A DNA stretch of 63,337 nt, filler included, from Octopus bimaculoides (lineage: Eukaryota): NCBI RefSeq assembly GCF_001194135.2. It is 8 parts of 8 records of this genome, joined end to end, with 100 filler letters (N's around TTAATTAATTAA, not from the genome) between each part and the next. Parts side by side here need not be neighbours in the genome. Positions count along the whole stretch, not along the records: positions 31,843 to 51,419 come from NC_069006.1; 7 more parts are not named here. One strand, written 5' to 3'. Shown in pieces: positions 31,630 to 53,047 of this stretch; position 1 is the first letter of the stretch; each line of letters starts with the position of its first letter. The notes beneath the pieces are model-generated. The model did no database searches. It was not told where the DNA came from and saw only the letters and a list, made by a program, of their open reading frames with translations. The position numbers and the translations under genes are program-made.

Positions 31630-31929
31630 TAATCAACAATATTTAGGTTCAATTTTCCCAGGATTTGCAAAGACGATTATATGTATCTTTCACTTTTTGT
31701 CTCTCTCCAAGTACACACACACACATACACACACACATATGTNNNNNNNNNNNNNNNNNNNNNNNNNNNNNNNNNNNNNNNNNNNNTTAATTAATTAANN
31801 NNNNNNNNNNNNNNNNNNNNNNNNNNNNNNNNNNNNNNNNNNCCCTACAGAAATGACTACAGTCATTTCCTTCCAGAAAGGCGACACACGAGGGAGAGAG
31901 AGAAATTTTGAAAGCCTACCTTTTGTACC

Positions 31930-32170
31930 CCCCAGCCCATAAAATGTCTTTTCGTCCAACATCTTTTGGTCCGGCGTCCTTCTGTCTGGTGATTTTTTTT
32001 TTGTCCAATGACAAATCCTATCAATAAAAATTCTCAAAGGTCATTTTATTTCGATGTCCACCTTTTCTAAAGAGTTTACTTAGGTTTGGACAGAAAAAAA
32101 CAAAAAAAAAACGTGGATGAAAGGGTCATTAGACAAAGTGACATTGGACAAAACGTCAGGTCGCGGTGAC
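31930..32170. mobile_element. MITE-like remnant with inverted subterminal motifs
   Basis: Left side ttttcgtccaa/ttttggtcc/ttttgtccaatgac is mirrored by tcattagacaaa/cattggacaaaacgtc on the right. Confidence 0.45.
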
Positions 32171-32622
32171 TGACAGGGTCAACAAAAACAACAACAAAGG
32201 CAAAAACAAACCGTCTCTGATGGGTTCCACAAGCAACAGAGGCAAGTTGAATCCATTATCTTGTCTAAGGAACACAGCACAATGGCTATAGCAAAGTTTG
32301 AACTCCTTCCCCCATGGTTTACAAGTCCAACAGTTTGATAGCGGAGGGGGTCACATGAAGCAATCAATATGAAGCCATACAACGACGGTGACAAAGGTAA
32401 ATATAAGCCAAAAGCACAACAAATCTTCCTGATTTACAAAACAAATTAAAATAGAGACAGCAGGTGGGTAGGTGGGAGTGCATGTGAGTTGTAACTGGGC
32501 AAGTGTTGGTTTGACTGTGTAGGTGTGTGTGTGTGATATGCACATAATATAGACATTCATATACACACAGGGTGTATATGATTTTAATTGTATGTATTTA
32601 CATACACATATATCTGTGTGCA

Positions 32623-32663
<41 letters not shown>

Positions 32664-32794
32664 AAGTATATATGCACACAAAAACATCAACAATCACTTT
32701 GTGTATGTGTGTGTGTCTATGTATGGATATGTGTATATATATAGATATATATATATATGAAAATATATGTGAGTGTGTGTATGTATGTATACAT

Positions 32795-32864
<70 letters not shown>

Positions 32865-34009
32865 CATACTTCAAGTGAGTGAATAGGTTTGAAGGAACAA
32901 AAAGCAGAGGAGTGGGTGGGTGGAGTTGGTTTCAGAACTAATTCTAGAAATCAATTCAAATGAAGGTCACACAACAACAACAGCAGCAACCACCACCACC
33001 ACCACCATCGTCACAACTACAGTTGCTGGATTAGCATTTTAAAAATATCTTGTGCTATAAAAAGCTGAAAGGGAGAAGCGATAAAGTGAAAATTGTAAGT
33101 AATCATCGAAAGGAATCCTTAATGGACAGCAGATGCAGAAATGCGCGCACGTCTAATCATCAAGTTGCACATATCATTTCAGGTGGATTGTTTTGCCAGA
33201 TCGACTTTCAATGGAGAGACTCAGATAAAATTAGACGCATGAATGGAGCAGTTGAGAAGCTGGAAGCTAAACTGCATGCGTAGGATGTTGTACTGCTAAC
33301 TACATGGCCCCCATGTTTGTATGTGTGCGTGTGTGTGTCTGTGTGTATATACATAGAGAAACACATTCACAAACACACACACATATATACACATACATAA
33401 ATATACATACGTATGTGTATAAATATCCATATATATACATACATAAATACACATGCATGTGTGTATATATATTTATACACATATATATTCATGCATACAT
33501 AAAGCCATACACACATGTGACTGAGTGTGTGTGTGTGTGTTTGTATATGTGTGGATAGATAGATAGATAGATATCGTGAGATAAAGTTACACACACACAT
33601 GTATATGTATGCATACATAGGCATATATTTATCTTTATCTGTTTTTACATCCATTTTTCCATACCATCATGGGTTAGACAGAAATTCATTTTACAACCAG
33701 ATGCTCCTCCGCTCACCAACCCTTAACCAGTCTTTTAAGTAAAGCATCTCATATTCTGCCTGCCTTCAAAAGCACAGGGTGAAGGACATATCACTTGTAG
33801 GCAATATGATCACCACTGCACAGATGGTGCCAGACATGCAGAATGTCGACATTCACTTCATCACCCCTCACTACCCACCACACAACATTGGGTGGCTCAA
33901 GACAATAGAAAGACACCCGGAGTGAGGTATAGTTGAGGTAAATCGTAGTGTATATATATGTGTAAAGGTGCATGGCTTAGTAGTGCCAGTTATATAAATA
34001 TCTGTGTGT

Positions 34010-34275
34010 GTGTGTGAATGTTTCCTTGTGTTCACATTGTGAGTTTCTTTTGTAAACGAATATCACCATCATACAAGCAGTGTTGCTCATATTCAGTCTT
34101 CCACGGAAACATGTCTGGCCGTTGAGCTGTTCTTGTTCAAAGAGCTAGGGGAAATATCAATTTGGTTGGAACCAGATGAGGGTTGACGACCTGCAGAGTC
34201 TCTGGCTGTACAAAACCTGCCTCAGTGAAATTTTGTCTGATCCATGCAAGCATGGAAAAGCAGACATTGTGATGA
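34010..34275 (+). mobile_element. SINE/LINE-tail family D with (GAT)n tail
   Basis: Ends catgcaagcatggaaaagcagacattgtgatgatg, the reverse complement of the ends of copies at 38.5 and 38.7 kb. Confidence 0.7.
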
Positions 34276-34819
34276 TGAGGAGGAGGAGGAGGAAATATTA
34301 AATAGCAACATTCTTTACAGTGAAATATGGTGTGTTGTTTTTATACCCGCAGCCCTGGCCATGTGATAGACAAACGAGAGGGCCAGTATATAATTATCGT
34401 GTCGTATAATTAACTGAAATAACGGTACACATGAACCGAACAAATATGACGTGTGAATTCAAACAACAGTACAGTAAATTACAGTAATTACACTACGAAT
34501 AATAATAATAATAAATAATAATAACAATAATAATAATAATGTGTGTGTGAGAAAGAGACACAGAGTCCATTCAGATTTAACATGGAAACAAAGACACCAA
34601 TATGCTCAATTATCAGAAATCAATATGATTGCCGAAATTCTATCAGGAAACACAAATATATATTTGTTGTCCAGTATATAAAAGTATCAAAGCTTTGCTC
34701 CGTCGTCTTGGCAGAAATTTCTAGACTAACAGCCAAAGGTTAAAGATATAACTATCTCTTGACCATCATCGAAAGGGCTTTTACGCTGCTGTTTGACCTG
34801 CTGGATATAACAGCCAATT

Positions 34820-35030
34820 TGAACTCAGAACATAAAGTCGGACCCAGTATGCTAACAATTCTGCCAGCTTACCGCCTTAGTAGTAGTAGTAGTAGTAGTA
34901 GTAGTAACCCCATCTACTATAGGCACAAGGTATGAAATAATGGGGGAGGGGTAGTTGATTACATTGACCCCCACCAATGAGATTTGTTTTATTTGCCACA
35001 AGGGCAAGAGATGAGTGGCACAGTACAAAG
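34820..35030 (-). mobile_element. SINE family B fragments around a (TAG)n repeat
   Basis: tttgaactcagaac..tgctaacaattctgccagcttaccgcc and ataggcacaagg..gttgattacattgacccc. Confidence 0.75.
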
Positions 35031-35268
35031 ACAGACTTAAAAGAATGGGTATTTACATAGAATGGCAGAATATGATACAAGAAAAAAAGAATTTTAATGC
35101 AAGTATACATGTTGTGCAATATATACAAAAGAAATGAAGGCTACATCAGTTAACAACAACACCGACAACAATGGAATAGGCTCTGTAAATGTTTCGAAAT
35201 CAGGCGTTCGGCCCCGTTTCTTAACCTTGAACAATTTGTATGCATGTCTGTTTGTCTTTCCCACTTAC

Positions 35269-35334
35269 AAGATCTGTTGGCCATTCTTTTGTCATGTTTT
35301 TCAGAGGGAGAAAGAGAGAAGTTTCGTGTAACTC
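35269..35334 (-). CDS. Weak candidate 66-nt phase 1-1 cassette exon (RVTRNFSLSPSEKHDKRMANRS)
   Basis: ctgcaag acceptor, gtaagt donor, open and in phase with the RERE exon 530 nt upstream; no homology support. Confidence 0.22.
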
Positions 35335-35864
35335 CTTGCAGTTCATAAGTAAACAAACAACAACGCAGAGTTGTGCCAACAAGTATGCACATTACATATG
35401 CATCAGTGTACATACACACACAGTGTGTATGTATAGATATGCGTATGTACTTATACATAAATATATGTATGAGTGTCTATATAAATATACAGACACAAAC
35501 ACACACATTTGTACACATAGATACATACATTTATGTATGTGTTTCCCTATATACATACATATATATATATATATATAAATATATACGGAAAAACATAAAA
35601 TAGATAAACGAAAAAGCAAAACATGAATTAATATTAAAAAAAAAAACAGTAAGCCAGAGACAAAGGCAGAGTGTTTGTGTTTACGAAGTAAAGTGATATG
35701 GATGTTTACTTAAAACAAAAAAGAAAAGAGAGAGAGGGAAACGGGCAACAGACGGTTGATGAACGTGATGAAGAGGGGGAGGAGGGGGGGTGAGACACAT
35801 GTAAATGAAAATGCGAAAACAAGAAGAAAGAGCAACAACAATGGCAACAGCTAGAGACACTTAC

Positions 35865-35970
35865 TGGTTTCTGTGTGTCGATCTTGCACAAGGTATTGAT
35901 AAACGTTGTAGGGTACTTCAGATGGACGATAATACCATTTCACATTCACCACCAGAGTATCGCGTTTGGT
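35865..35970 (-). CDS. RERE: RERE/Atrophin-2 (arginine-glutamic acid dipeptide repeats protein) internal exon, BAH domain
   Basis: Long polypyrimidine tract plus ttcaag acceptor, gtaagt donor, 106 nt (phase 0 to 1). Encodes [35 protein letters not shown] versus remembered human RERE [35 protein letters not shown]. Confidence 0.92.
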
Positions 35971-36157
35971 CTTGAAACACAAGATGAGGAGGAGGGGGAG
36001 GAAGAAAAAATGAAAAGAAAAGAAAAGAAAGGTTTGTTAGACTGGCAATATTACAAACATTAAGCAATCATCAACATCATCATCAACAACAATATCAACA
36101 TCATCATCAACATCAGCATCATCGACACTATCATCATCCTCATCAGTTTATGCTCAG

Positions 36158-36264
36158 CTTTTGTCTTTTACTTGTTAAAGTCATTAGACTGCGATCATGC
36201 TGGAGCACCACTGCCTTCGAGAATTCTTTTAGTCGAATGAATCGACCCCAGTTCTTATTCTTTC
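36158..36264 (-). mobile_element. SINE family A 3' tail
   Basis: cttttacttgtt..gtcattagactgcgatcatgctggagcacc..atcgaccccag. Confidence 0.8.
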
Positions 36265-36275
36265 TACAGCTGAAT

Positions 36276-36293
36276 GGGTCCATATATGGACCC
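36276..36293. promoter_or_regulatory. Perfect 18-bp palindrome containing a CArG box (CCATATATGG)
   Basis: gggtccatatatggaccc visible; CC(A/T)6GG is the SRF consensus. Confidence 0.4.
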
Positions 36294-37384
36294 ACCAGGG
36301 CCAAATGAACCCCACAGTGTATCACAAGGTTAAGCAATTAAGGTTTTAGATGCAAATTCCAGCAATTAATGTCTTGGATTTTCTTTTATCGCTGGAGAGA
36401 GAGACAGAGACAAAGATAGACAAACGGAAAAGAGAGAGACATAGATAGACAAACGGAAAAGAGAGAGAGGTGGAGGTAGCTAGGTAAACCTTGTGGAAGA
36501 AAAAAATTTCTTTGCTTTATATTTTTTTGGTTATTGTAAGCCTCAGGTTCCCCTCCCCCCCATACACACACATGCCCTAACTCCAGATTGTTAAAAGTCT
36601 GCAAGTGAGAGGGGTAAAATGCGTGAAAAGAAACTGATTGGTGATATATTATTACAGACTTGCAAGGAAATAGGAAAAAAAAAGGAGGAGAATTGTTTAT
36701 ATTAGAAATATTTTGTTGCGGCAGGTAAGAATAAGTTTTACTGCTGCAGAAACCCCTGGAAAGGTGCAGGTGAAGACGGAGTAGCGGTGGGAGGGGGGAA
36801 GTTGATTCTGCTAGAGTACAGCACACCGGTCTGCTTTTTTTCTTTTTCTCTTCCTCTCTGGAAGTGCAAAATCATCAATCAANNNNNNNNNNNNNNNNNN
36901 NNNNNNNNNNNNNNNNNNNNNNNNNNNNNNNNNNNNNNNNNNNNNNNNNNNNNNNNNNNNNNNNNNNNNNNNNNNNNNNNNNNNNNNNNNNNNNNNNNNN
37001 NNNNNNNNNNNNNNNNNNNNNNNNNNNNNNNNNNNNNNNNNNNNNNNNNNNNNNNNNNNNNNNNNNNNNNNNNNNNNNNNNNNNNNNNNNNNNNNNNNNN
37101 NNNNNNNNNNNNNNNNNNNNNNNNNNNNNNNNNNNNNNNNNNNNNNNNNNNNNNNNNNNNNNNNNNNNNNNNNNNNNNNNNNNNNNNNNNNNNNNNNNNN
37201 NNNNNNNNNNNNNNNNNNNNNNNNNNNNNNNNNNNNNNNNNNNNNNNNNNNNNNNNNNNNNNNNNNNNNNNNNNNNNNNNNNNNNNNNNNNNNNNNNNNN
37301 NNNNNNNNNNNNNNNNNCCACCACCAGTACTGCTGCTGCTGCCTGGCACTCTGTCACTTATGACAAGTGTTTCAACTGATTCAA

Positions 37385-37832
37385 TCAACAAAACAGTATG
37401 CACACAAAATTAATGTGAAAGTGGCTGAGCACTCCACAGACTCACTCTGAGAGAGATTCAGCACAATCCAGTGTGTGAAAGGCCTCAAAAGGATGAAAGG
37501 TAAAGTAGACCTCGGCTGAATTTGAACTCAGAATGTAGCGACGGGCGAAATACTGCTAAGCATTTCGTCTGGCATGCTAACGACTCTGCCAGCTTGCTGG
37601 CTTAATAATGATAATAATAATGGTTTCAAATTCTGCCACAAGGGCAGCAGTCTTGAGGGGTGGGGATAGTTGATCACATCGACCCCAGTACTTCCCTGGT
37701 GGTACTTAATTTTTCAGCCCTGAATGGATGAAAGGCAAAATCGACCGTGGCGGAATTTGAACTCAGAATAGGAAAGATGGTCGAAATACCAATAAGCACT
37801 CTGCCCGGGATGCTAACGCTTCTGCCAGCCTG
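37385..37832 (-). mobile_element. SINE cluster: fragment of another family plus two tandem family B copies
   Basis: gtggctgagcactccacagac; gaatttgaactcagaat..gctaacgactctgccagct occurs twice. Confidence 0.8.
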
Positions 37833-38454
37833 CTGTGTGTGTCTGTGTGTCTACTGGGTATATCTAATCTACACTGGATGTGTTAAATAGACACACACGA
37901 CTTTCACCAGCAACGATAAAGACGAAGATGGGAAATGGAAGATATTGGGAGAGATAAGTAGGGGGGAGAGGGGTGGGGGGCAGAGTCAAGAAGAGATTAA
38001 GAGAAAGATTGCNNNNNNNNNNNNNNNNNNNNNNNNNNNNNNNNNNNNNNNNNNNNNNNNNNNNNNNNNNNNNNNNNTAAAAAAAAAAAATAAAAGCTAA
38101 ACCCAACATTTTAAATAATGAAGAGAAGAAGAGAGATAAGATGATGATGATGATGATGATGATGAAAGGAGAACAACAACGACAGCAACATCATCACAGA
38201 AGCAAAGATATCTTAGAGCAAGGATTATGGCAGATTATCACCAAAGACTGGGTATTTGCATTACAGCCTTAATTACATCTCTTAAATACCTCAACAGTTT
38301 TACCTTTCGTTACAAATATGGAACGAATGGGAGAAGTTCAAGAAACATTTCATGGAAGTGCTTTGGCATTACTGTCTTTTTTTCCCCCTTTTTTAATTAC
38401 AAAGAAGCATCAAACCAACGATGGAGATTCTGCATTGGCAAGCTTTAACTGATT

Positions 38455-38912
38455 CCATCATCATCATCATCATCATCATTTAATGTCTGCTTTCCATGCT
38501 GGCATGAGTCGGACAATCTGACAGAAACTGGTCAGGACGGGAGCTGCAGGATCCATTGTGTGCTTTTGGTAGGTTTTCTATGGCCAAATGCCCTTCTTAA
38601 TGTTAACCACTTTACAAAGTGAACTGGGTGCCTTTTACGGGGCTTACTTCCAAAACCAGATACATGCACCGAAATGACTTTTGAGTAATTGTTTAAAACA
38701 ATGACCTGAATCATCACCATCACCATCATCATCATCGTTTAACGTCCGTCTCCCATGCGGGTATGGGTGGGACGGTACCACAAAAGCCAACCAGGCTGGA
38801 GACTGCACCGGACTTCTGTGTCTGTTTTGGCAGGGTTTTTACAGCTGGATGCCCTTCCTAACACCAATCACTCAGCAGAGTGGACTTGGTGCCTTTTACG
38901 TGGCACAAGCAC
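38455..38912 (-). mobile_element. Two family D SINE/LINE-tail copies with (CAT)n ends
   Basis: catcatcatttaatgtctgctttccatgctggcatg and catcatcgtttaacgtccgtctcccatgcgggtatggg..ggatgcccttcctaac. Confidence 0.8.
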
Positions 38913-40007
38913 AATATCTGATTTTGATTAGAAGACTAAGATTCGTCTGCTGTCTTATATATGGCACCTATCCCAGTTTGACTGAAGAAAAATTTCACAT
39001 GTGTGAAGCCAGCAACTTCTAGATTGTGTTTTAATGGTTATCATGGAATCGACTATCTTATGCACTTACACCGGTTTTAAAAGTCGGCTCCTCATATACG
39101 GTGTCACAGACATTAGAAGACATCAGTAGCTTTCTTTAAGAGAAAGTCCCAGGTTAGTGTGGTGGATAAAGTAGAATAGTTGATGATGATAGTGAGGATG
39201 GTGGCGGTGGTGGTGATTGCAGCAATGGCGATGGTGGTGGAGACGGCGCAAGTGTGGTGGTGGTGGTGGTGGCGGCAGTGCTGATGCAAGACTTCAGTGA
39301 GAGCTCTACAATCATCTTTATTATATACCATTGTTTTATATATATATATATAGAAAGAGAGAGAGAGAGAGGGAGAAAATAGGGTGTATGGATGGATGGG
39401 TGGAGGTATGATTGATGGTAATTTCACGCTGACCCTTCTGACCCCTACCCCCCATCCCTAAAAATATGCATAATAGATTAACGCCTGGGATGACAGGGCA
39501 AAGCTACCGAAATTACTGTCAGATGACGGTGAAAATGGCCAATTAAATTAACCTGCCCTATAATTTCTCTCCCCTGGCAGCAAAAACAGTTCTTTAAGCG
39601 GGAAGAAGGGGGGTGAACTGTACGGAGGTGGGAGGTATGTCGAGAGAGAGGGGGGAGGGGGAGAGATAAAAGGGAATGAAGCAAGTGAGAGAAAATTAAG
39701 AAGGAGCTGAAAAATAAAGAAGAAAATATCAGAGTAGAGAGAGAGAGAGAGAGAGAGACTGTGTGTGTGTGATTGAGAGAGGGGAGAGGGGGATAGAAAA
39801 AGGGAGAGAAGGAGGTGAGATAAAATTAGAAAGGAGCTTAAAGAAAAAAGAACAAAAAGATCAGAGAGAGGGTGAGAGAGAAAGAGAGATGTTGTGATGT
39901 GATCAATGTGTATCCAGTAGCAGCAGGGTCAGAGAGATATTGAGGAGGGGGTAACAGACCCCCCCCTCCCCGGAAGGAAAAGTCAGCAATAAATACTCAG
40001 AACACAG

Positions 40008-40530
40008 CTGCGGGCATGGCTGTGTGGTAAGAAGTCCGCTTCCCAGCCACATGGCTTTGGGTTCAGTCCCACTGCATGGTACCTTGCGAAAGTACCTTCT
40101 ACTATAGCTTCCGGCCAACCCAAAGCCTTGTCAGTAGATTTGGTAGATGGAAACTGAAAGAAGCCTGTCGTTTAGATCAGTGCTCCACAACCAGTGTACC
40201 ATGGCACACTGGTGTGTCATGGCACAATGCTAGGTGTGCTGCAGTGTAACCTGAATATAATTTCTACCTTATACTTTTAATTTATATTTTTAGTTCAGAC
40301 ATGCGGTCGAATTTTCAAAAACAATATAAGTGTACAAGTAAAAAAAAGCTTGTGGAGCACTGGTGTGTGTGTGTGTGTTGTGTTAGACAACCAGTATTAG
40401 TTTGTTCACATCGCCATAACTTAGTGGTTCAGCAAAAGAGACCGATAGACTTAAAATACAACTGAAACTTCTTCCAGGCGGTGCTCCAGCATGGCCGCAG
40501 TCCAACAAGTGAAACAAAGTAAAAAGGTAA
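40008..40530 (+). mobile_element. Near full-length SINE family A interrupted by a hAT MITE
   Basis: Head ggcatggctgtgtggtaagaagtccgcttcccagccacatgg..gggttcagtcccactg; tail ggcggtgctccagcatggccgcagtc..gaaacaaagtaaaa. Confidence 0.9.
40178..40362. mobile_element. 185-bp hAT (Charlie-like) MITE nested in the SINE
   Basis: Perfect 13-bp TIRs cagtgctccacaa (40178-40190) and ttgtggagcactg (40350-40362); left flank gtttagat resembles the Charlie nTCTAGAn target. Confidence 0.85.
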
Positions 40531-40729
40531 AAATAACATATCTAAGGGGAAACTTCTTTTCTCTCCAAGACAGAACAGAGACTGCTTTACATAGTCGTGT
40601 GCACTTCGGGGTATATAATGTTTAGTTATTCAAATAGAGATGGAAGAGAAAGTACCAACAGAAAAGACGTTTTGTGTTCATTATAAACAGGAAAGATCTC
40701 AAAATAAAACCTCATCATTAAAAGAAAAG

Positions 40730-41070
40730 GAAGGACACACTGCGTGATGTATTCTTAGATACATTGTGGTCGAAGATGAGAGGAAGTTAAGGCTAGAATG
40801 ATTTTGATCAATCAGAACTGGCCTCAAGTTAAACAGCAAGCAAACAAGAGAACTGGGTGATCAGCGTTGCTAGAAGTAGCAGCCAGATTCTACTTAAAAC
40901 AGACAGTCTTCTTCTAATAAATGAAGAACACACAAGATAACATACAGCTAGAAGATGGGTGATAAAGTGTTTAATATACTGCTAGAAGATGGGATGGTCA
41001 AAGACGAAATGACTTTATATATTAAGACTGCTTTTAATCAGAATTAATCGAGGGCTAAAAACAACAACAA
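40730..41070 (+). mobile_element. SINE family E with (CAA)n tail
   Basis: gctagaagtagcagccagatt..gatgggatggtcaaag..gagggctaaaaacaacaacaa. Confidence 0.6.
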
Positions 41071-42574
41071 GGAAAAAACGTATTAAGTTGAAAAGCATTT
41101 ATGGAGATCCAACTGCTTTGTTTTAATAAAACGGATTTAGTGAAAGATTGACAAAATATGAGCACTTGCAGCTGCTGGTGCTGTTAGCTGAGACAGTCAG
41201 AAGTGAGGCCGAGTTAAATTGAAACACCTCAGGTGCCGGTCTCTTTAGAAAAGAGAGAGAGACAAGGCAGGGAGAGAGAGGAGAGGCAGTGATTAAATTT
41301 TAATGTCGTCGTCGTCTCCTCTTCTCTCTCTCTGTGTCAGCCACAGTCCTGTAAGGGAGGCAACTCTAGATTCTTACTGCCTCAACTTTTTTAATTTATT
41401 TCAAAATTTAATTTTCTTGCTTTAAAATGTTTAATTGAAAAAGAAAAAAAACTTTTTTTTTTTCGGAGTTTCCCAAAATAAAACGCTTACATAAAGTAGA
41501 AAGGAACAACGGCAGTGTGGAGGAAGGCAGGCAGGCAGGAGGGGGTGGTGGGGATTAAATAAACATTTTATGGACTACAGAAAAAAGAAAAAACGAAAAC
41601 TACGATTCTTATTTATAATCCGTTGTTGTTGTTGTTGTTGAGCAAGATTAGTTGAGCCGATATTTGTGGTTAAATCTGGAGAATGTGTTCAAGAGATAAA
41701 GGAAATATATAGACTTGCTGGAGTTGTTTGTATGGCTGACAAAGTTGGAGAGGACGACGACGACGAGAAACCACCACCAACGCCATCGAACAGAATAAAT
41801 ATATATATAGTGAGAGAGAGAGAGAGAGAGAGATCCAAAGAAAAGCAGATAGAAATGACATTAGGACGTGGTTTGGCATCTTGTATTTATCAGAACTTGA
41901 TGGCGCTTTGACGGATATTTCTAGGGACGTCTATGAAAATACCTACAATTTGAACTACACACACACACACACACACACATATATACTTACACGTGTACAT
42001 CCATTCATTATATATATAAACACATGTTCCCACCCTTATATATATGTATATACACACACATGTACATACATGTTCTCATTCATATATATGTACACACCAC
42101 ACGTTCGCCGATCGCCGGCCATCCATGCCGTCTTCCTTTAAGAAAAAAAACAAAAACAACAGCAACAACAACATTAGATAACGTAACTAAATGCCTATTT
42201 ATTTACTGGCTCAGCTCTAAAACACTATTTGAATCTACACAATAAAGACACGAGGCTAAGCAGGAGAACGTACGTAGCGAAGAAGATGACGACGGAGACG
42301 ATGGCGATGAAACAAATAGATAAATAAATAAAAAATTAGTGTTATCACAACAGCAAAAATACCAGAGATGTTATAATAGGCATTAGCCTGTGTTATCTTT
42401 GCATCCACCGCCACCAGTACCGCCATCCACCCGGCCACCCCACCAGTTTATCTTAAGGAAAACACAAACAGCAGAAACAAAATTAGCTTTCCTCGGTGTC
42501 TAAACTGGCTTTCTATTATAGTCAGCTGTTATCTTAGGTTTGAGTTAAAAGTCTATCAGTTCTGTTTGCAAAAC

Positions 42575-42618
<44 letters not shown>

Positions 42619-45389
42619 GCATTGCACACAGCCAGAGAGAGAGAGAGAGAGAGAAAAAGAAAATGGAGACCAGATACTCAGGGTACTTATACACCACAAG
42701 CATTGAGAGGCAGCGGGGTACCTTAAAGAAAGAAAAACAGGGTAAGAAGCCCAATGCCTTGTTCTATTGGAGCTAACTAAGTGCTAATCCAGAAACTGGT
42801 ATCCAGAAATGTTCTTGAAACTGTACAAAAAGAACCCAGTTAATCAGACAATGCAAAGAAAATGGTATGGAATTCCAGAAATTGAAAGGATTCCGTGAAT
42901 AAACAAATCTTTGAGAGAGGAAAGAGATTCAATACAGCAACTTTTCGTCTGTTGTGTGATTCTACATGCTGAGAGGAAACAGATGATGGTATGTAGTGCA
43001 AAACGGCAGCAAAGCTACAAGACTGCTTGTTCTTAAAGAGCCTAATATCTCATCCAAGTCTTCCAATATAACTGAAGGTGGTTTTCCGTTCTTAGATGTC
43101 CAGAGTGAAGACTAGAGGCTACATAACTGCAGAGAACTAATCATGGCTTTGGGCAAAAACTTTACATTCTCTTCGTTGTTTAACATGTTTTTAACTACAA
43201 CTTAATCAGGGATGACTGGGACTAAACAACTCTTATACAAAACAGCCAAGAGTGGAACTCGTATATGGCCACATGAGATGCTAGAAATAGCAGACTCTGC
43301 CTATGAAACTCTACTCACAAGTGATCCCACGTTAACCTTCAGGCCTATGGAGGAAGACACATTGGTAATGTGCCACGGAATACGATCCATCCAGTTTGGG
43401 GAGCCCTGTGGTTGATATGCAATGTTAACCACACAGCTACGTCTGGCCCCGTCTCTCTTGCTTCTGACAGAGCAAGGAGCTGTCAGAATAAACGGCACAG
43501 TACTCTTACAATTAGTACCATTCTGTGAGACTTGGCAACTCTGCTACACTCCCTCCCTCCCTCCCTCTCAGCCCTCACAGCTGCAGGAAACTGTTCTGTC
43601 AACATCTGTTATGCCATTTAATTACTCTGGGAACTACTTTTATACACTCACACATACACACACACGTGTGCACGCAAACATATATTATACACACCACACA
43701 CACATACATAATTTATACACATGCATATATATTACATACACACACAGTTCCTTAGAAACCCAGGAAAAATTTCTAAGTACAAAACCATTACAATATATAT
43801 AAGAGTTTGATGCACACGTGTAGCTAGGCATACGTATACTATAAATACATCTACATCTACAAACACATGTGTTTATATACATCTACATATACACACACAG
43901 ATACATAAAACCAGATATGTATATGGGTGTATGTGTGTGTACACGAAGCAGACATTTGGTCATCCAGTGTGGTAAACAGATCTCGTTTTCTACACCGGAT
44001 TACAATATTTTGCGGGTATTTTGTTTAAAAAAAAAACATAAAATAATTAAAACTACCTCATGCCTAAATACTTCTCTCCCTGTATATATATACATATATA
44101 TATATATCTACAACAGAAACAACAACAGTAACAACAACAGCAACAGCAGAACTGAGGGTTTTAAAGTGGCATATGTAATGTAATTAATTATGGAAACGAA
44201 CCTTTATAAATTAAATTAGCAGACGATAAATGAAACGAGAGTCGGAACTCAAATGTGGGAATGTCGGCTTTTGCTTTTGTGAATGAAATGTAGGAGGCTG
44301 ATGGAATTNNNNNNNNNNNNNNNNNNNNNNNNNNNNNNNNNNNNNNNNNNNNNNNNNNNNNNNNNNNNNNNNNNNNNNNNNNNNNNNNNNNNNNNNNNNN
44401 NNNNNNNNNNNNNNNNNNNNNNNNNNNNNNNNNNNNNNNNNNNNNNNNNNNNNNNNNNNNNNNNNNNNNNNNNNNNNNNNNNNNNNNNNNNNNNNNNNNN
44501 NNNNNNNNNNNNNNNNNNNNNNNNNNNNNNNNNNNNNNNNNNNNNNNNNNNNNNNNNNNNNNNNNNNNNNNNNNNNNNNNNNNNNNNNNNNNNNNNNNNN
44601 NNNNNNNNNNNNNNNNNNNNNNNNNNNNNNNNNNNNNNNNNNNNNNNNNNNNNNNNNNNNNNNNNNNNNNNNNNNNNNNNNNNNNNNNNNNNNNNNNNNN
44701 NNNNNNNNNNNNNNNNNNNNNNNNNNNNNNNNNNNNNNNNNNNNNNNNNNNNNNNNNNNNNNNNNNNNNNNNNNNNNNNNNNNNNNNNNNNNNNNNNNNN
44801 NNNNNNNNNNNNNNNNNNNNNNNNNNNNNNNNNNNNNNNNNNNNNNNNNNNNNNNNNNNNNNNNNNNNNNNNNNNNNNNNNNNNNNNNNNNNNNNNNNNN
44901 NNNNNNNNNNNNNNNNNNNNNNNNNNNNNNNNNNNNNNNNNNNNNNNNNNNNNNNNNNNNNNNNNNNNNNNNNNNNNNNNNNNNNNNNNNNNNNNNNNNN
45001 NNNNNNNNNNNNNNNNNNNNNNNNNNNNNNNNNNNNNNNNNNNNNNNNNNNNNNNNNNNNNNNNNNNNNNNNNNNNNNNNNNNNNNNNNNNNNNNNNNNN
45101 NNNNNNNNNNNNNNNNNNNNNNNNNNNNNNNNNNNNNNNNNNNNNNNNNNNNNNNNNNNNNNNNNNNNNNNNNNNNNNNNNNNNNNNNNNNNNNNNNNNN
45201 NNNNNNNNNNNNNNNNNNNNNNNNNNNNNNNNNNNNNNNNNNNNNNNNNNNNNNNNNNCCTTTTACAAGCTTCACTGAATTTTCAATTTTTTCTCCTTAA
45301 TTCTAGCTACCGCCCCCCCTCTCCACTCACCATCCCACTGATTCTCTCCCTCCATCTCCCTCTTTTTCCTATGAGGTTACTACTGACTT

Positions 45390-45548
45390 GTATGAGCTTC
45401 CATACTTCACTCTTAATGACCATGGGATTGCACCTAGAAAATTCCCCTCCGAGGCACAAGTCTGGACAAGGTTGTTCATGGAAGACAACACAAAGCCCGG
45501 TCCAAGAATCTAACAATTGTGAACCAGATGCTCTTAACCACTGAGCCA
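45390..45548 (-). mobile_element. SINE family C, partial
   Basis: aatgaccatgggattgcacctagaaaattcccctccgaggcacaagtc..cttaaccactgagccat. Confidence 0.85.
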
Positions 45549-45896
45549 TACACACACTCAGCTACAGATGAAGTCACAAGGAAAAAAAAAACACAGCTAA
45601 ATGATGCAGTCACAGACAGATTCAAAAACACAAATACACACACACATATATACATACACACCCTTACATATACACAGGGCAATAGAAAGCCAGTTCATAT
45701 GTCTATATGCAGACATATAATGAGAACCCCCCACACACACACACAGCAATATAAAACAAGTCATGTCACACGTACACATGAGCAATGAGAACAACAAATA
45801 CGCACACACGCACACAGACACACATAGACACAACGGATACTGATTCTTTCCTAAACACATACAAGACAAGCCACATCCACTCTCACAAATAACAGT

Positions 45897-45942
<46 letters not shown>

Positions 45943-46329
45943 GCAGGCAGCCATGGAAAAGTGAACAGGAAGCTATCAATGTGAATAACTTCATTAGATA
46001 AAACAGCATTTAATAATAACAAGGCAGCCATTTGTATTGAGAGAGAGAGAGAGAGAGGATGATTAAAGGCGATAATGTCGCCAGCATCACCACCACCACC
46101 ACAGAACAATTAGCAGATTGTGGCGTCCATGGGAGCGCTTCGACTTGGACTGACCACACGAGGGACAATGGAACAACAAAACTCTAGCAATCACCATAGA
46201 GAATTGTTTTAACAAACAAGCAAGCAAGCAACTAGCAGCAGCCGTGCTACCTGGCCATTTGGTCTGGGAGACATAGCAAGGCAAAACTCCCTCCGAATTA
46301 CTCTAGACTCAAACAGAAAGAAAAGAAAG

Positions 46330-46640
46330 AAACCCTTTTGGTCATGAATGACCATGGGATTGCATCTAGAAAGTTCCTTTCCTAGGCAAAAGTCCGGGCA
46401 AGGTTGCTTATGGAAGACCAGTAGACGCCCTTGCATACCAGCCTCCCCTCCTCTCCACACCATCGATGTTATCCAAGGGAAAGGCAAAGGGGCCGATACA
46501 GCTTGGCACCAGAGACATCGCAACTCATTTCTACAACTGAGTGAACTGGAGCAATGTGAAAATAAAGTGTCTTGCTCAAGAACACAACACACAGCCTGGT
46601 CCAGGAATCAATTGCACTCTAACCACTGAGCCATGTGTTT
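46330..46640 (-). mobile_element. SINE family C, near full length
   Basis: gtcatgaatgaccatgggattgc..gagtgaactggagcaa.gtgaaataaagtgtcttgctcaagaacacaacacacagcc..ctaaccactgagccatg (tRNA-like head). Confidence 0.9.
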
Positions 46641-46829
46641 TCACTTCAAAGTACAATAAAGTACATGTTGGATTTTGGATTGGATTGGATTGTCCATGTT
46701 CAGTCCACTGCAGGACAAAGGCCTCAGCATCTTCTCTCGCCCAACCATGGTCTGATGTGGGCCATGAATTTGATCTTGAGATTTTATTCGTATAATGAGG
46801 CTCAACAGGGCTTGGCAGCTGGGTGTAGT

Positions 46830-47015
46830 TTTGTTTATACTCAAGAGTAGTTAAGTGGATTCCATCGACCCCAGTGCTCAACTGGTACTTATTTTATCAA
46901 CCGTGAAAGGATGACAGGCAAAATTGATTTTGGCGGAATTTGAACCCAGAACATAGAGACATACAAAATATCATGAAGCATTACACCTGGCTTGTTAACA
47001 ATTCTGCCAGCTCAC
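46830..47015 (-). mobile_element. SINE family B
   Basis: atcgaccccagtgctcaactggtacttatttt..ggaatttgaacccagaac..aattctgccagctcaccacc. Confidence 0.88.
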
Positions 47016-47624
47016 CACCCACCTAAAGGATATATAAACACAAGAAAATGGGATGGTCAAAGTTGGGATGTCTTTGAACATAATTCTACTGAATCAAAGA
47101 CCATCTGATTGGGAAGAAAGCTTCTTCTCCAAACCATATTTTCACAGGAAGCAGCTCAAGTTTGGCATTAGCACTATTAATAAAACAACAAACATGCACA
47201 CACACACGCACAAGGAAATTGTTGGCAGTGAATTTGTTGCTTCACCACAGACTGGCATTCTTGGACTGTCGGGGAAGCCATTCCACAGTAGAACTTCAAA
47301 ATAAATCGGTCGACCTTTCCTTTGTAAAAATAAATTTTATATTCTCCGCTTAAATTCTTTGAGTGATCCTTCAGTTAATGTTTCTATGGCTGACTGCACA
47401 CAACAAACATTATTTTTTTAAAAACCCACACTGTGTGTGTGTGTGTGTGTTTTATAGACATGTAAAGGAAGTGGGTATCTGATTTTTGTGCAGTCATACA
47501 ATACCTGTATGACCTTTGGATACATTTGAACGGCAGAACACAAGAATCCAGGAATAAATCAAAGTGGAGGCAGACATTTGACCGTGAATATTATTGTTGC
47601 TGTTGTTGTTGTTGTTGTTGTTAT

Positions 47625-47845
47625 TTAAGGCAATGAGCTGACAGAATTGTTAGCATCCTGGGCAAAATGTTCTGCACATTCTCATCCGTCTTTATGTTCT
47701 GAGTTCAAACCCCGCTGAGGTCGACTTTGCCTTTCATCCTTTCAGGATCGATAAAATAAGTACCAGTTGAAGACTGGGGTCAATGTAATCAATTCATCCC
47801 TACCGCCCCCACAAGCTGCCCTTGTGGCAAAATTTGAAACCATTA
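47625..47845 (+). mobile_element. SINE family B
   Basis: ggcaatgagctgacagaattgttagc..ctgagttcaaacccgctgaggtcgactttgcctttcatcc..gtaccagttgaagactggggtc. Confidence 0.9.
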
Positions 47846-48294
47846 TTATTATTGTTGTTGTAATGGCTTCTCTCTTCCTTTCTACTTCTCGCTCGATGCA
47901 CCTTCAATGAGCCACAGCAAAACTTGTGATTATTCAATAAATGGCACCGGAGAAATGGTAAACATAACATTTGAAGAAGCTGACAGAAGAAAGGTAGAAT
48001 TTTTTTTTCAAAGACAGCTATGAAGAGGCAGATTGGCCCCTCCCATTCCATGAAACGACACTGGCACATTAACCAAGTTAAAGACTTGTCAGTTATATAA
48101 CAGCAAAGGTGACTTATGTCTTTGAGAATTTCCTGGCAAAGTGAATTTATGGAAAATTCTAAGTTTTTTTTTCTTTTACTTCAAAAATTTTCCTCATTGA
48201 TTTCTTTTTTTTTTATTATTATTTCCTATTCTGTTTTGATTTTTCAATTCCACATATTCTTGCCATGTGACAGAGAAACCCCAGTGACACTTAC

Positions 48295-48345
48295 TCGGTG
48301 CCCTGAGAAACTGTCCATGTTGCCAAGCGCTGTGAGCGCCATGCT
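48295..48345 (-). CDS. Candidate 51-nt RERE exon (SMALTALGNMDSFSGHR, phase 0-0), cassette or alternative-start exon
   Basis: Acceptor tgtcttcctcttcacag, ctaac branch-like motif ~50 nt upstream, donor gtaagt; AGCATGG gives a strong Kozak context; joins in frame to the BAH exon at 35970. Assignment to RERE is inferred from strand, position and phase. Confidence 0.55.
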
Positions 48346-49076
48346 CTGTGAAGAGGAAGACAATCTTTTGTGACAGCAACGATGGAGAATGCGACGTTAG
48401 ATTATCTCAAAAATCTTTGAAGCTTCTCCACCAACTCCAAGAACAACAAACGGAAGAAGCAGACCAATAAATAAATAATAAAGCTTTCAGGAATTTACTA
48501 CTTTTTTTTTTTCTTTCTTCTCCCCGTTCTTCGATTCTTAAGCTAAGTAGAAAACCAGGAAATACACAGATAGCCGCCACTTTCTAACAAAAGTGAACGC
48601 CAACAGAACATTCTGCATCATTTCTAGAGATTTTCTTTGATTTTTGGTGAAATCATTTCATATTTTGTCTAGATATATATTTTCACACACACACACACAC
48701 ACACAAATCTGCTAATATAAACACATATATACTAACAGACATGCAAATTCAACACACACACACACATAGATGTTGGCAAACACATACCAACACACACACA
48801 CACATAGATGTTGGCAAACACATACCAACACACTAATACGTATATGCACACACACACACATATATATATATAATCTACCCTGTGTATGTGTGAGTATGTA
48901 GGCATGTGTATATGCATGTATGTATAAATGCAGGTACACACACAGCACACAATTAATTAAACACAACCAACAAGACATTACACAAAGATTTCCATAAGAA
49001 CCATATCCTCTATATATGCGACAGCCTCTATATACACACATATATACACACACACACGTGTATATATATATATATA

Positions 49077-49115
<39 letters not shown>

Positions 49116-49789
49116 CCAATAGTAAAGTTTAAAACCTTTTCCCCCTCAAGNNNNNNNNNNGAATTTATAATCAGATTTTTTCTTCTGCAGTTTTCACAAA
49201 ATAGAAATGGTAAAAAGATAAAAAAAAAAACAAAAAAAAGGCACACACACACATTCGCACACAAAAAAAACCCCCCAAAAAAAAGAGAAGGAAAGAAAAA
49301 GAAATTTATTATATTAGATGATTTCTGTGCAGCTCACAATGTTTTACTCTTTAGAAATGACGTTAATTTAGCAATGTGGCGAAGAAGAAGAAGAAGAAGA
49401 AGAAGAAGAAGAAGAAGAAGAAGAAGGGGGAGAAGAAGAAGGGAGACAGGTACGAAGAGATAAATAAAACCATTCTCTTCCGTACTACATCAGTAACAAA
49501 ATAGATTCTTGCAAGATTACAATTGAATAAAACACATCATTTTACAATAAGGAGGAGGAAATTGGAGAAGCAAAAGACATTTTTAGCAGTAAAAATACAA
49601 CATGGCTTGATGGAATTACAAGCATAAATGTCTCTCTCCCTCCCCCCTCTCTCTCTCTGCTTTTGCTTTGATATAACCCGAGGAAACACATTCAGATATA
49701 TTCAAAAGATGATGTATGGCAAAGCACAGAATCTGCTTGTGTTGTTGTTGTTGTCGTCATAATAATCACTGCCACAGTGGTCGTTGTTG

Positions 49790-49842
<53 letters not shown>

Positions 49843-50542
49843 CGAAACACAATTTTGATACGTGGTTGGTTATGAAAGAGTTGGAAATATTTCAAATGTT
49901 ATATAGCATGTAGGGAAAAGGTGGGGGGGGGGGAAGCAGGGAGAGAAAGAAATCAGATCACCTGAGGTAGAGGAAACTGTGTGTTTTATGCCCCCCCACA
50001 CACACACAGACACACATACACATGTACATACTCATGCACAAACACACATACACACACACGCACGCATAAAGCTATCAAATTTAACTGGTTATAAATCTAT
50101 AAAGTACAGAACACAGAGGACAAACAGACAGACCAATAAAATAAAAAAGCAAACAAACAAAACAGGATTTCTCTCCTCCCACCACTACCACTGCCAACAC
50201 TAATCCGATTGGTGAATGGTTACAATAGTCAACGACCTCCATCACTTCAGTTAAACCTGCACCAGAAATATTTCACACAGCCAGGAAATGAATGAGGAAC
50301 ACACAAATATCGTCTACAGATGTCGGCATGCGACAACAAGAACAACATGAACAATTCAGTGTGAGTTCTGCAATGGTGCACAGCGATTGCACTTGGAGCT
50401 GTGTACTGCAAGAAGGTTTCTAGGTGCTCTGAGGAGAATTAAAGATTTAAATTAAGGCTTTCAGGAACCCACGCAAATGGATAATCCCCGAGAGTCTCAA
50501 AGATTAATCCATTTCTGCAGGATTTCTTCATATGTGAACATA

Positions 50543-50709
50543 GGCGTAGGCGTAGTCATGTGGGAAAGAGTTTGCTTCCCAACCACACGATTCCAAGTTC
50601 AATTGCACTGTGTGGCACCTTGGGTAAGTGTCTTCTACTATAGCTTCGGCCAATCAAGGCCTTGTGAGTGGATTTGGTAGATGGAAACTGAAAGAAGCCC
50701 ATCATGTGT

Positions 50710-50757
<48 letters not shown>

Positions 50758-50850
50758 GTGTGAATACATGGCCTAGTGGTTAGGGTGTTACACTCAGGAT
50801 TGCAAGATAATAGTTTCAATTCTCAGACCAGTAGGCACATTGTGTTGGAG
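50543..50850 (+). mobile_element. SINE family A 5' part plus a second tRNA-like SINE head
   Basis: ggcgtaggcgtagtcatgtgggaaagagtttgcttcccaaccac..ggaaactgaaagaagccc; catggcctagtggttagggtg. Confidence 0.8.
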
Positions 50851-53047
50851 GGTCTCCTCATCCACAGATGTTCAAGACAAGAACCCTCAATCACCCCTCT
50901 CCCTCCGCCATCAGCCAAAATTCTGTGACAAAGATAGTGCTCCCTGCTGCGCCTTAGATAGAATTGGTTAAACTTTCTCAACCATTGAAAGAACATCAAT
51001 GAATTTCAACTTCTCTTTCTGCCATGTTTCATGCGATTTCTTCATGTTTTACTAGAGTCAAAACGTTGTGAAGCCATAGAAAGATTTAAAAATATTTGAC
51101 ATTAATCTTTTTGGTTCAGGAAAAACAACAAAAAGAAAAAAGAAAAAAGAAAAAGAAAAAATCTAAAAAGCAAAAATGAAAAATCAATCCAAGAAAACCA
51201 AACAAATAAAGAAATCATTTTTAAATCTGAGAATTTCATTTTCCTTTCTTTTTTAATCTTTATTAAATTCTAAATTTGACTTCAGGATTTAATCGAGAGC
51301 AAGATAAAGCTTAACATCACCTTTCTAGATTGTTCATTGATGTGACTGTAGTCACATTAACAATATACATCAATCTAAATATACTTGTATGTATGTACAT
51401 ATATATATATATATATATANNNNNNNNNNNNNNNNNNNNNNNNNNNNNNNNNNNNNNNNNNNNTTAATTAATTAANNNNNNNNNNNNNNNNNNNNNNNNN
51501 NNNNNNNNNNNNNNNNNNNTGTTTGTCTGTTTACTTGTGTGCGTGTGTCTGTGTGTGCAAGCACGCATATCATTCAGTATGTTATTCTATCTTCAATTTC
51601 TGCACGGTTACAAAGAGGAGATCTCTCTTATAGTTATTAAATATGTCTTCGCTGTTTAATTGCCGTATGCATTCCCTCAAGCGTATGTCAATGAACATTA
51701 CATAATGAAATACACAAAAACGTCTCAGGTGTTGCTAGGTGATATTAGGTTGCTCACCTTCATTATGTAGATATATTTCCATATAAAGGTATTCGGTTAT
51801 TTCTATTTCAAAAAAAAAAAAAAAATGATGAATCGACGAAAATTGGTCTTTGTTATATATATACAAAGATATTCAAACACCCGCTGAGTACACACTTAAA
51901 TGGAAACACACACACGTACACATATACACGTATGTGCATATAAGTATATGTACGTACACATATATATATATATAAATACATATATATATATATCCATATA
52001 TACATACATACACATATATATATATATGTATATATGTACATATATGAATATATACATATATATTCTAGTTGTTTGTATCATGTTCTTTTTTGTCTTTGTT
52101 GCCGTAAACATTCGCTAAATTTCTTACAAAAAATTGTAATGCTCTTAGCTAAGACTTTTTGGAGGGGCAATCATTTCGAACTGTCTCAAGTGTAACTCCC
52201 CAAAAATGTAATGAGTCGGGTATACTTGATTGATGAACGAAGTCCACGAATGACTCCGCTTTTTTCCCTGTTCTTCTAATTGTTGATTCTCCTGTTCGCC
52301 TTCGTATCGTTTACCTGTCGGAATGTCTTATTGTCTTATATANNNNNNNNNNNNNNNNNNNNNNNNNNNNNNNNNNNNNNNNNNNNNNNNNNNNNNNNNN
52401 NNNNNNNNNNNNNNNNNNNNNNNNNNNNNNNNNNNNNNNNNNNNNNNNNNNNNNNNNNNNNNNNNNNNNNNNNNNNNNNNNNNNNNNNNNNNNNNNNNNN
52501 NNNNNNNNNNNNNNNNNNNNNNNNNNNNNNNNNNNNNNNNNNNNNNNNNNNNNNNNNNNNNNNNNNNNNNNNNNNNNNNNNNNNNNNNNNNNNNNNNNNN
52601 NNNNNNNNNNNNNNNNNNNNNNNNNNNNNNNNNNNNNNNNNNNNNNNNNNNNNNNNNNNNNNNNNNNNNNNNNNNNNNNNNNNNNNNNNNNNNNNNNNNN
52701 NNNNNNNNNNNNNNNNNNNNNNNNNNNNNNNNNNNNNNNNNNNNNNNNNNNNNNNNNNNNNNNNNNNNNNNNNNNNNNNNNNNNNNNNNNNNNNNNNNNN
52801 NNNNNNNNNNNNNNNNNNNNNNNNNNNNNNNNNNNNNNNNNNNNNNNNNNNNNNNNNNNNNNNNNNNNNNNNNNNNNNNNNNNNNNNNNNNNNNNNNNNN
52901 NNNNNNNNNNNNNNNNNNNNNNNNNNNNNNNNNNNNNNNNNNNNNNNNNNNNNNNNNNNNNNNNNNNNNNNNNNNNNNNNNNNNNNNNNNNNNNNNNNNN
53001 NNNNNNNNNNNNNNNNNNNNNNNNNNNNNNNNNNNNNNNNNNNNNNN

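Follow-up and report, generated by a model that had tools for sequence, protein, structure and literature searches.

A 51-nt exon-like segment in a BAH-domain intron of Octopus bimaculoides RERE is probably an unused intronic look-alike

The window analyzed was a stretch of 63,337 nt of Octopus bimaculoides DNA joined from eight parts of assembly GCF_001194135.2. The piece described here covers positions 31,843 to 51,419 of this window (NC_069006.1). A tblastn search with human RERE identified a single RERE exon in the piece, the BAH-domain exon listed in Table 1. This exon matched residues 176-210 of XP_052832900.1 (P0003, O. bimaculoides) at 35/35 positions and was 69% identical to the human RERE query. 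XP_052832900.1 contains Pfam BAH (PF01426), ELM2 (PF01448), GATA (PF00320) and Atrophin-1 (PF03154) domains, with a weak SANT-type match (PF00249, Myb_DNA-binding). No Pfam match was obtained for the short peptides, the BAH exon included, which by itself is too short. The PDB search gave only a weak match of the WYYRP motif to the plant BAH proteins SHL and EBS. The host is assigned as an Octopus RERE (atrophin-2-like) gene and the exon as its second BAH-domain exon. The RERE protein is a corepressor with a link to neurodevelopment. The gene encoding XP_052832900.1 spans ~216 kb, and RERE gene ranges spanned 216-222 kb. The exon encoding ...CTIQNFRI was absent from the piece, so the host intron is longer than 15.4 kb.

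Several SINE-like interspersed repeat families were present in this intron, with 72-80% identical copies in both orientations, at 37488-37835, 46854-47014 and 47625-47852, at 40023-40165 and 50559-50699, and at 38456-38643 and 38715-38904. Long microsatellites of the TG/CA, TA and GA types were located at 32500-33650, 35390-35620, 41950-42100, 42560-42680, 43600-43950, 48680-49110, 49980-50070 and 50700-50770. The microsatellites gave sub-threshold Rfam matches to mir-297, mir-466 and mir-3149 as well as mechanical ORFs of the YIYIYI and CVCVCV kind. They are not miRNA genes.

Table 1. Features of the RERE intron and of the exon-like segment (positions along the window)
Feature	Position	Strand	Description
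Genuine RERE BAH-domain exon	35970..35865	minus	106 nt, 35 codons + 1 nt; ttcaag before, gtaagtgt after
Candidate 51-nt open segment	48345..48295	minus	17 codons, no stop, reads SMALTALGNMDSFSGHR
Acceptor-like site	48360..48346	minus	11-base pyrimidine run tcttcctcttc (48360..48350), then acAG (AG 48347..48346)
Donor-like GTAAGT	48294..48289	minus	context CGA/gtaagtgt; directly 3' of the candidate
Branch-like ctaac	48400..48396	minus	A ~52 nt upstream of the candidate start
Intervening AG	48366..48365 (about -21/-20)	minus	between ctaac and the proposed acceptor
UGC trinucleotide	48378..48376 (-33..-31)	minus	upstream of the pyrimidine tract
Assembly gaps (N runs)	36883-37317, 38013-38077, 44309-45258, 49151-49160		1,460 N in total; the first three lie between the candidate and the BAH exon

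Deep in this intron lies a 51-nt segment that had been proposed as an exon splicing into, or starting within, the RERE BAH domain. The features on which the original prediction was built, namely ctaac, the pyrimidine tract with its CAG, 17 open codons, GTAAGT, AGCATGG and UGC, were all found in place on the minus strand. The AG between ctaac and the acceptor had been overlooked. The codons of the segment read, 5' to 3', AGC ATG GCG CTC ACA GCG CTT GGC AAC ATG GAC AGT TTC TCA GGG CAC CGA. Its 5' end, as an upstream-exon junction would enter it, is AGCATGGCG / AGCATGGCGCTCACAG. The first ATG has an A at -3 and a G at +4. Bases 48294..48287 on the minus strand are GTAAGTGT, and the intronic octamer gtaagtgt is common to the candidate donor and the genuine BAH-exon donor. 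A hypothetical splice from the candidate to the BAH exon would read ...TCAGGGCACCGA/ACCAAACGCGAT...

Branch points usually lie 18-40 nt upstream of the acceptor, and the ctaac is farther upstream than that. If it served as the branch, the AG at -21/-20 would be met before the proposed acceptor; splicing there would lengthen the segment by 20 nt and shift it out of frame. The nearer gtcAc, at about -26, is a more plausible branch candidate.

XP_052832900.1 reads FRI/TKRD at the exon junction and the BAH exon opens with ACC after AG, so the acceptor of this exon is in phase 0. With this phase and a length of 51 nt, insertion of the candidate would keep the frame. The predicted 0-0 phase, in frame with the BAH exon, is borne out by this junction and by the 35-residue identity. 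The distance between the two, given earlier as 12.3 kb, was measured as 12,325 nt; as 1,450 N of assembly gaps fall in this interval, the true distance is uncertain.

Splice sites were scored with a crude PWM. With hand-set frequencies in place of MaxEntScan or octopus-trained models, so that ranks are indicative only, the candidate acceptor scored 12.1 bits (rank 3 of the 880 AGs on the minus strand) and the candidate donor 7.0 bits (rank 21 of the 1,254 GTs). The corresponding scores of the genuine BAH exon were 4.7 and 7.1 bits. By summed score the candidate was second best among all AG...GT pairs of 21-300 nt, and at its own thresholds it was the only such pair on either strand. Pairs with an acceptor at least as good as that of the BAH exon and a donor of at least 5 bits numbered 98 on the minus strand and 87 on the plus strand, of which eight and three, respectively, were open in phase 0-0. 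Another high-scoring pair was found nearby on the same strand at 47979..47804. An equally good open pair in phase 0-0 occurred in 3.7% of 300 simulated 18-kb strands (third-order Markov; expectation 0.04), under thresholds chosen after the candidate had been seen. Scaled to the ~216-kb gene, splice score and frame by themselves lead one to expect ~0.5 such pairs. For a single intron the pattern is unusual and better than a typical chance match, yet it was picked post hoc.

The candidate has a GC content of 59%, compared to 36% in its flanks, and contains three CpG. Around the segment the GC peak spans no more than ~150 nt; of the 51-nt windows within the piece, just 2.2% are as GC-rich. The CpG observed/expected ratio at the site was ~0.71 against 0.44 overall; other windows reach up to 1.5, so the value is unexceptional. 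The nearest interspersed repeat copy ends ~440 bp away and does not cover the candidate.

A non-coding RNA or repeat origin of the site was considered and rejected. No Rfam family matched there, the listed matches all being sub-threshold and on microsatellites. No tRNA was predicted at the site, and no second copy of it was found within the piece.

The segment was missing from both octopus proteins that a phmmer search returned, O. bimaculoides XP_052832900.1 and O. vulgaris CAI9741342.1 (P0002), each of which reads ...CTIQNFRI/TKRDTLVV... across the junction. This search, run exhaustively against 1.84 billion cluster representatives, yielded 137 matches, none of which aligned to the 17 residues. 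All 137 were anchored essentially on the BAH-exon part of the query, and the few longer alignments involved the matched protein's own translated polypyrimidine tract or unrelated N-termini. None of the 5-6-residue words of the candidate peptide occurred in the 263 relatives retrieved. Exact look-up in a collection of 15 billion proteins was negative for four hypothetical isoforms, two with the cassette included and two started at the ATG, and likewise for the genomic read-through ORF. An 85-aa ORF on the opposite strand over the site was also not on record. Degenerate back-translation of the candidate peptide gave 0 matches in JGI metagenome contigs.

A word-index protein search, on an index of poor recall, returned no candidates for the 52-aa peptide of candidate plus BAH exon. 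Chimeric queries of 184 and 431 aa found no cephalopod sequence with an insert in the same index, which missed P0003 itself. P0003 stands alone in its 90% cluster and is the collection's product for that gene. Of each gene's products the collection retains the longest one; an otherwise identical isoform with the insert would be 17 residues longer and fall in the same cluster, so the presence of P0003 without the insert counts for a pseudo-exon. Among the invertebrate RERE proteins retrieved, the junction was direct, FR[LRI]/[ST]K[RK]D, with one carrying a 6-residue extension. None of the papers found in a literature search dealt with cephalopod isoforms of the RERE BAH domain, and RERE is not mentioned in a 2026 preprint on tissue-specific exon quantification in O. 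bimaculoides, as far as its main text goes.

One invertebrate RERE-like model, P0001 (237 aa), carries two tandem copies of the segment NCVYIENKRPENPYFICGIKHFRLTKRDTLVTDIKWYFRFSEVPFSVYTLLVQDRTTEN, probably because the two BAH exons were duplicated in assembly or annotation. P0001 had the top phmmer score, with two matched stretches, because of this tandem.

The original prediction had noted an unrelated 42-residue insert (VHNSQ..GPVG) at the FKL/SKRD junction of human RERE, and an insert of this kind was indeed seen in mammalian proteins. It reads VHNSQACCRSP[TPA]PALCDPPACSLPVA[SA]QPPQHLSEAGRGPVG and lies between FKL and SKRD in the RERE of pig (P0210), toothed whales (P0161) and hamster (P0054), conserved at ~40 of its 42 positions. 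It may be encoded by a separate phase 0-0 exon, as the original prediction states for human RERE. In the AlphaFold model of the native octopus protein, the junction I175/T176 falls between a strand (165-175) and a turn (176-180, TKRDT) that is followed by a second strand (181-187), with a local pLDDT of ~83-94. In the pig model the 42-aa insert forms a low-confidence loop (pLDDT ~30) between the equivalent strands, 122-133 and 179-187. By these predicted structures, an insertion at the beta-hairpin turn is structurally tolerable, which removes an objection and lends no positive support to the octopus segment.

Non-conserved inserts of 14-58 residues were observed at FKL/SKRD in many fish, bird and lamprey RERE models (P0073, P0089, P0157-P0169, P0183-P0190, P0196, P0200 and P0214). 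Nearly all of them start with V or VS, the translation of GTAAGT, and many end in ...LQ or ...FQ, the translation of a pyrimidine tract plus CAG. These ends suggest that they are annotation artefacts, with exon boundaries pushed into the intron by projection of a mammal-like protein. A direct FKL/SKRD junction was present in skate (P0142) and tit (P0060). Other vertebrate models start within the intron before the SKRD exon (P0140, P0141 and P0139), among them Notothenia P0140 with MEKMGKPE/SKRD; a turkey model has MPLDLLFQ/SKRD. The turkey start MPLDLLFQ looks like a translated 3' splice site.

The best explanation of the segment, with a probability of roughly 65%, is that it is an intronic pseudo-exon, an unused look-alike. 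Here "unused" refers to annotated and deposited products, and gene models are weak on tissue-restricted exons, which often go unannotated. Splice-like signals are present and the annotated products skip the segment, which lies inside the intron, on the sense strand, between splice-site-like flanks. Chance would have brought a GC-rich stretch, short, open and in frame, together with a strong acceptor-like site and a consensus GTAAGT. The spliceosome would normally join the ...CTIQNFRI exon straight to TKRD..., the candidate leaving with the intron, and no tissue would be expected to include the segment appreciably. Exon-like pairs are common in the piece, as the counts and the simulation show, which counts for a pseudo-exon. 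Pseudo-exons are estimated to be about ten-fold more numerous than real exons in long pre-mRNAs (PMC1935003).

Several observations weigh against a pseudo-exon. Both the acceptor and the summed score of the pair rank near the top of the intron. The segment stands out in GC from its flanks and belongs to none of the interspersed repeats seen in the piece. A GC contrast of this kind between exon and intron is expected in low-GC genomes with long introns. As the frame is kept, a transcript that includes the segment would escape nonsense-mediated decay. Mammals also carry their conserved insert at the hairpin turn where the segment would be inserted. Absence from gene models has weak weight, and the protein index had poor recall.

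It is unlikely, though the leading rival, that the segment is a real cassette exon, used at a low level or in particular tissues, that inserts 17 residues in the BAH hairpin turn as a lineage-specific parallel of the mammalian insert. Its splice sites are consensus-like, its length is a multiple of three and its phase is open, so that strong signals go together with a kept frame and with a chance expectation of ~4% for this intron. The narrow GC peak and the position of the junction between strand and turn, where pLDDT is locally ~94, are also consistent with a cassette, as are the conservation of the mammalian insert across pig, whales and hamster and its modeled place as a loop at the same point between the same two strands. 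Against a cassette, the segment was found in none of the gene models or deposited proteins looked at, and its peptide resembles neither the mammalian insert nor anything else. An AG intervenes between ctaac and the acceptor, and prior odds favour pseudo-exons (PMC1935003). Most of the apparent vertebrate inserts at the junction look like annotation artefacts and not precedents.

A shade more doubtful is the bolder proposal that octopods independently gained a 17-residue cassette at the hairpin of the mammalian insert, as convergent tuning of the BAH domain in a RERE corepressor and possibly with neural restriction.

That the segment is spliced, only not as coding RERE, is very unlikely. It would then belong to a nested or non-coding transcript that is unannotated, or be a transient intermediate in stepwise removal of the intron. 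Such a role would suit the length and repeat content of the intron, the strength of the splice-like signals and the presence of more high-scoring pairs nearby on the same strand, such as 47979..47804. No Rfam family, tRNA or repeat was found at the site, though, and no evidence for any other transcript was seen. The segment opens with AGCATG, so that no 5' splice site would be rebuilt on its joining to the upstream exon, making classical recursive splicing unlikely.

The least probable reading, and a very remote one, is an alternative first coding exon, in which transcription would start upstream of 48345 and the ATG of AGCATGG would give MALTALGNMDSFSGHR-TKRD..., a product lacking the first BAH strands. 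The A at -3 and G at +4, the fit of donor and frame to the BAH exon, and the vertebrate models that begin in this intron and splice to SKRD (such as the Notothenia one) favour it, but these models are largely ab initio predictions or fragments, chance often places an ATG within 51 nt, the strong acceptor that is present would be superfluous in a first exon, the upstream 300 nt has 30-36% GC and a CpG observed/expected ratio of ~0.7-1.0 with no CpG-island-like region, exact look-up of the hypothetical products in the protein collection was negative, and a product without roughly strands 127-175 would, by the AlphaFold model, probably form no BAH domain.

Should the segment prove to be a used exon, one loop of the RERE BAH domain would have received an insertion twice independently, which would mark this loop as a recurrent place for isoform-level regulation, here in a cephalopod. 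As a pseudo-exon it is a caution: in a ~216-kb gene with AT-rich, repeat-rich introns, about 0.5 in-frame exon look-alikes of such quality are to be expected by splice-site score and reading frame only, and to take one as an isoform would require junction reads or conservation across species.

The candidate can be compared to three known systems. The mammalian 42-residue insert occupies the identical protein junction and is flanked by the same pair of beta-strands; a disordered loop is predicted for it, and the candidate would likewise extend the hairpin turn. The mammalian insert is conserved and present in deposited proteins, in contrast to the octopus 17-mer, which no protein contains and which has no sequence in common with it.

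SRRM3/SRRM4-dependent neural microexons are the second system. The candidate is likewise short, frame-preserving and placed in a structured domain of a neurodevelopmental regulator, with a UGC upstream of the tract. Neural microexons are usually limited to <=27 nt, and at 51 nt the candidate is longer than that, so the suggestion of a microexon-sized cassette is weak. The suggested loose resemblance to Srrm-type enhancers is weak as well: the UGC is present, but with a chance of ~40% for one UGC in ~40 nt, it carries no statistical weight.

The third system is the intronic pseudo-exons of long metazoan introns. Like them, the candidate lies deep in an intron, is exon-sized, has consensus-like 3' and 5' sites and is absent from annotated products. 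It differs in being open and in frame and in having splice scores and a GC contrast that rank high for the intron.
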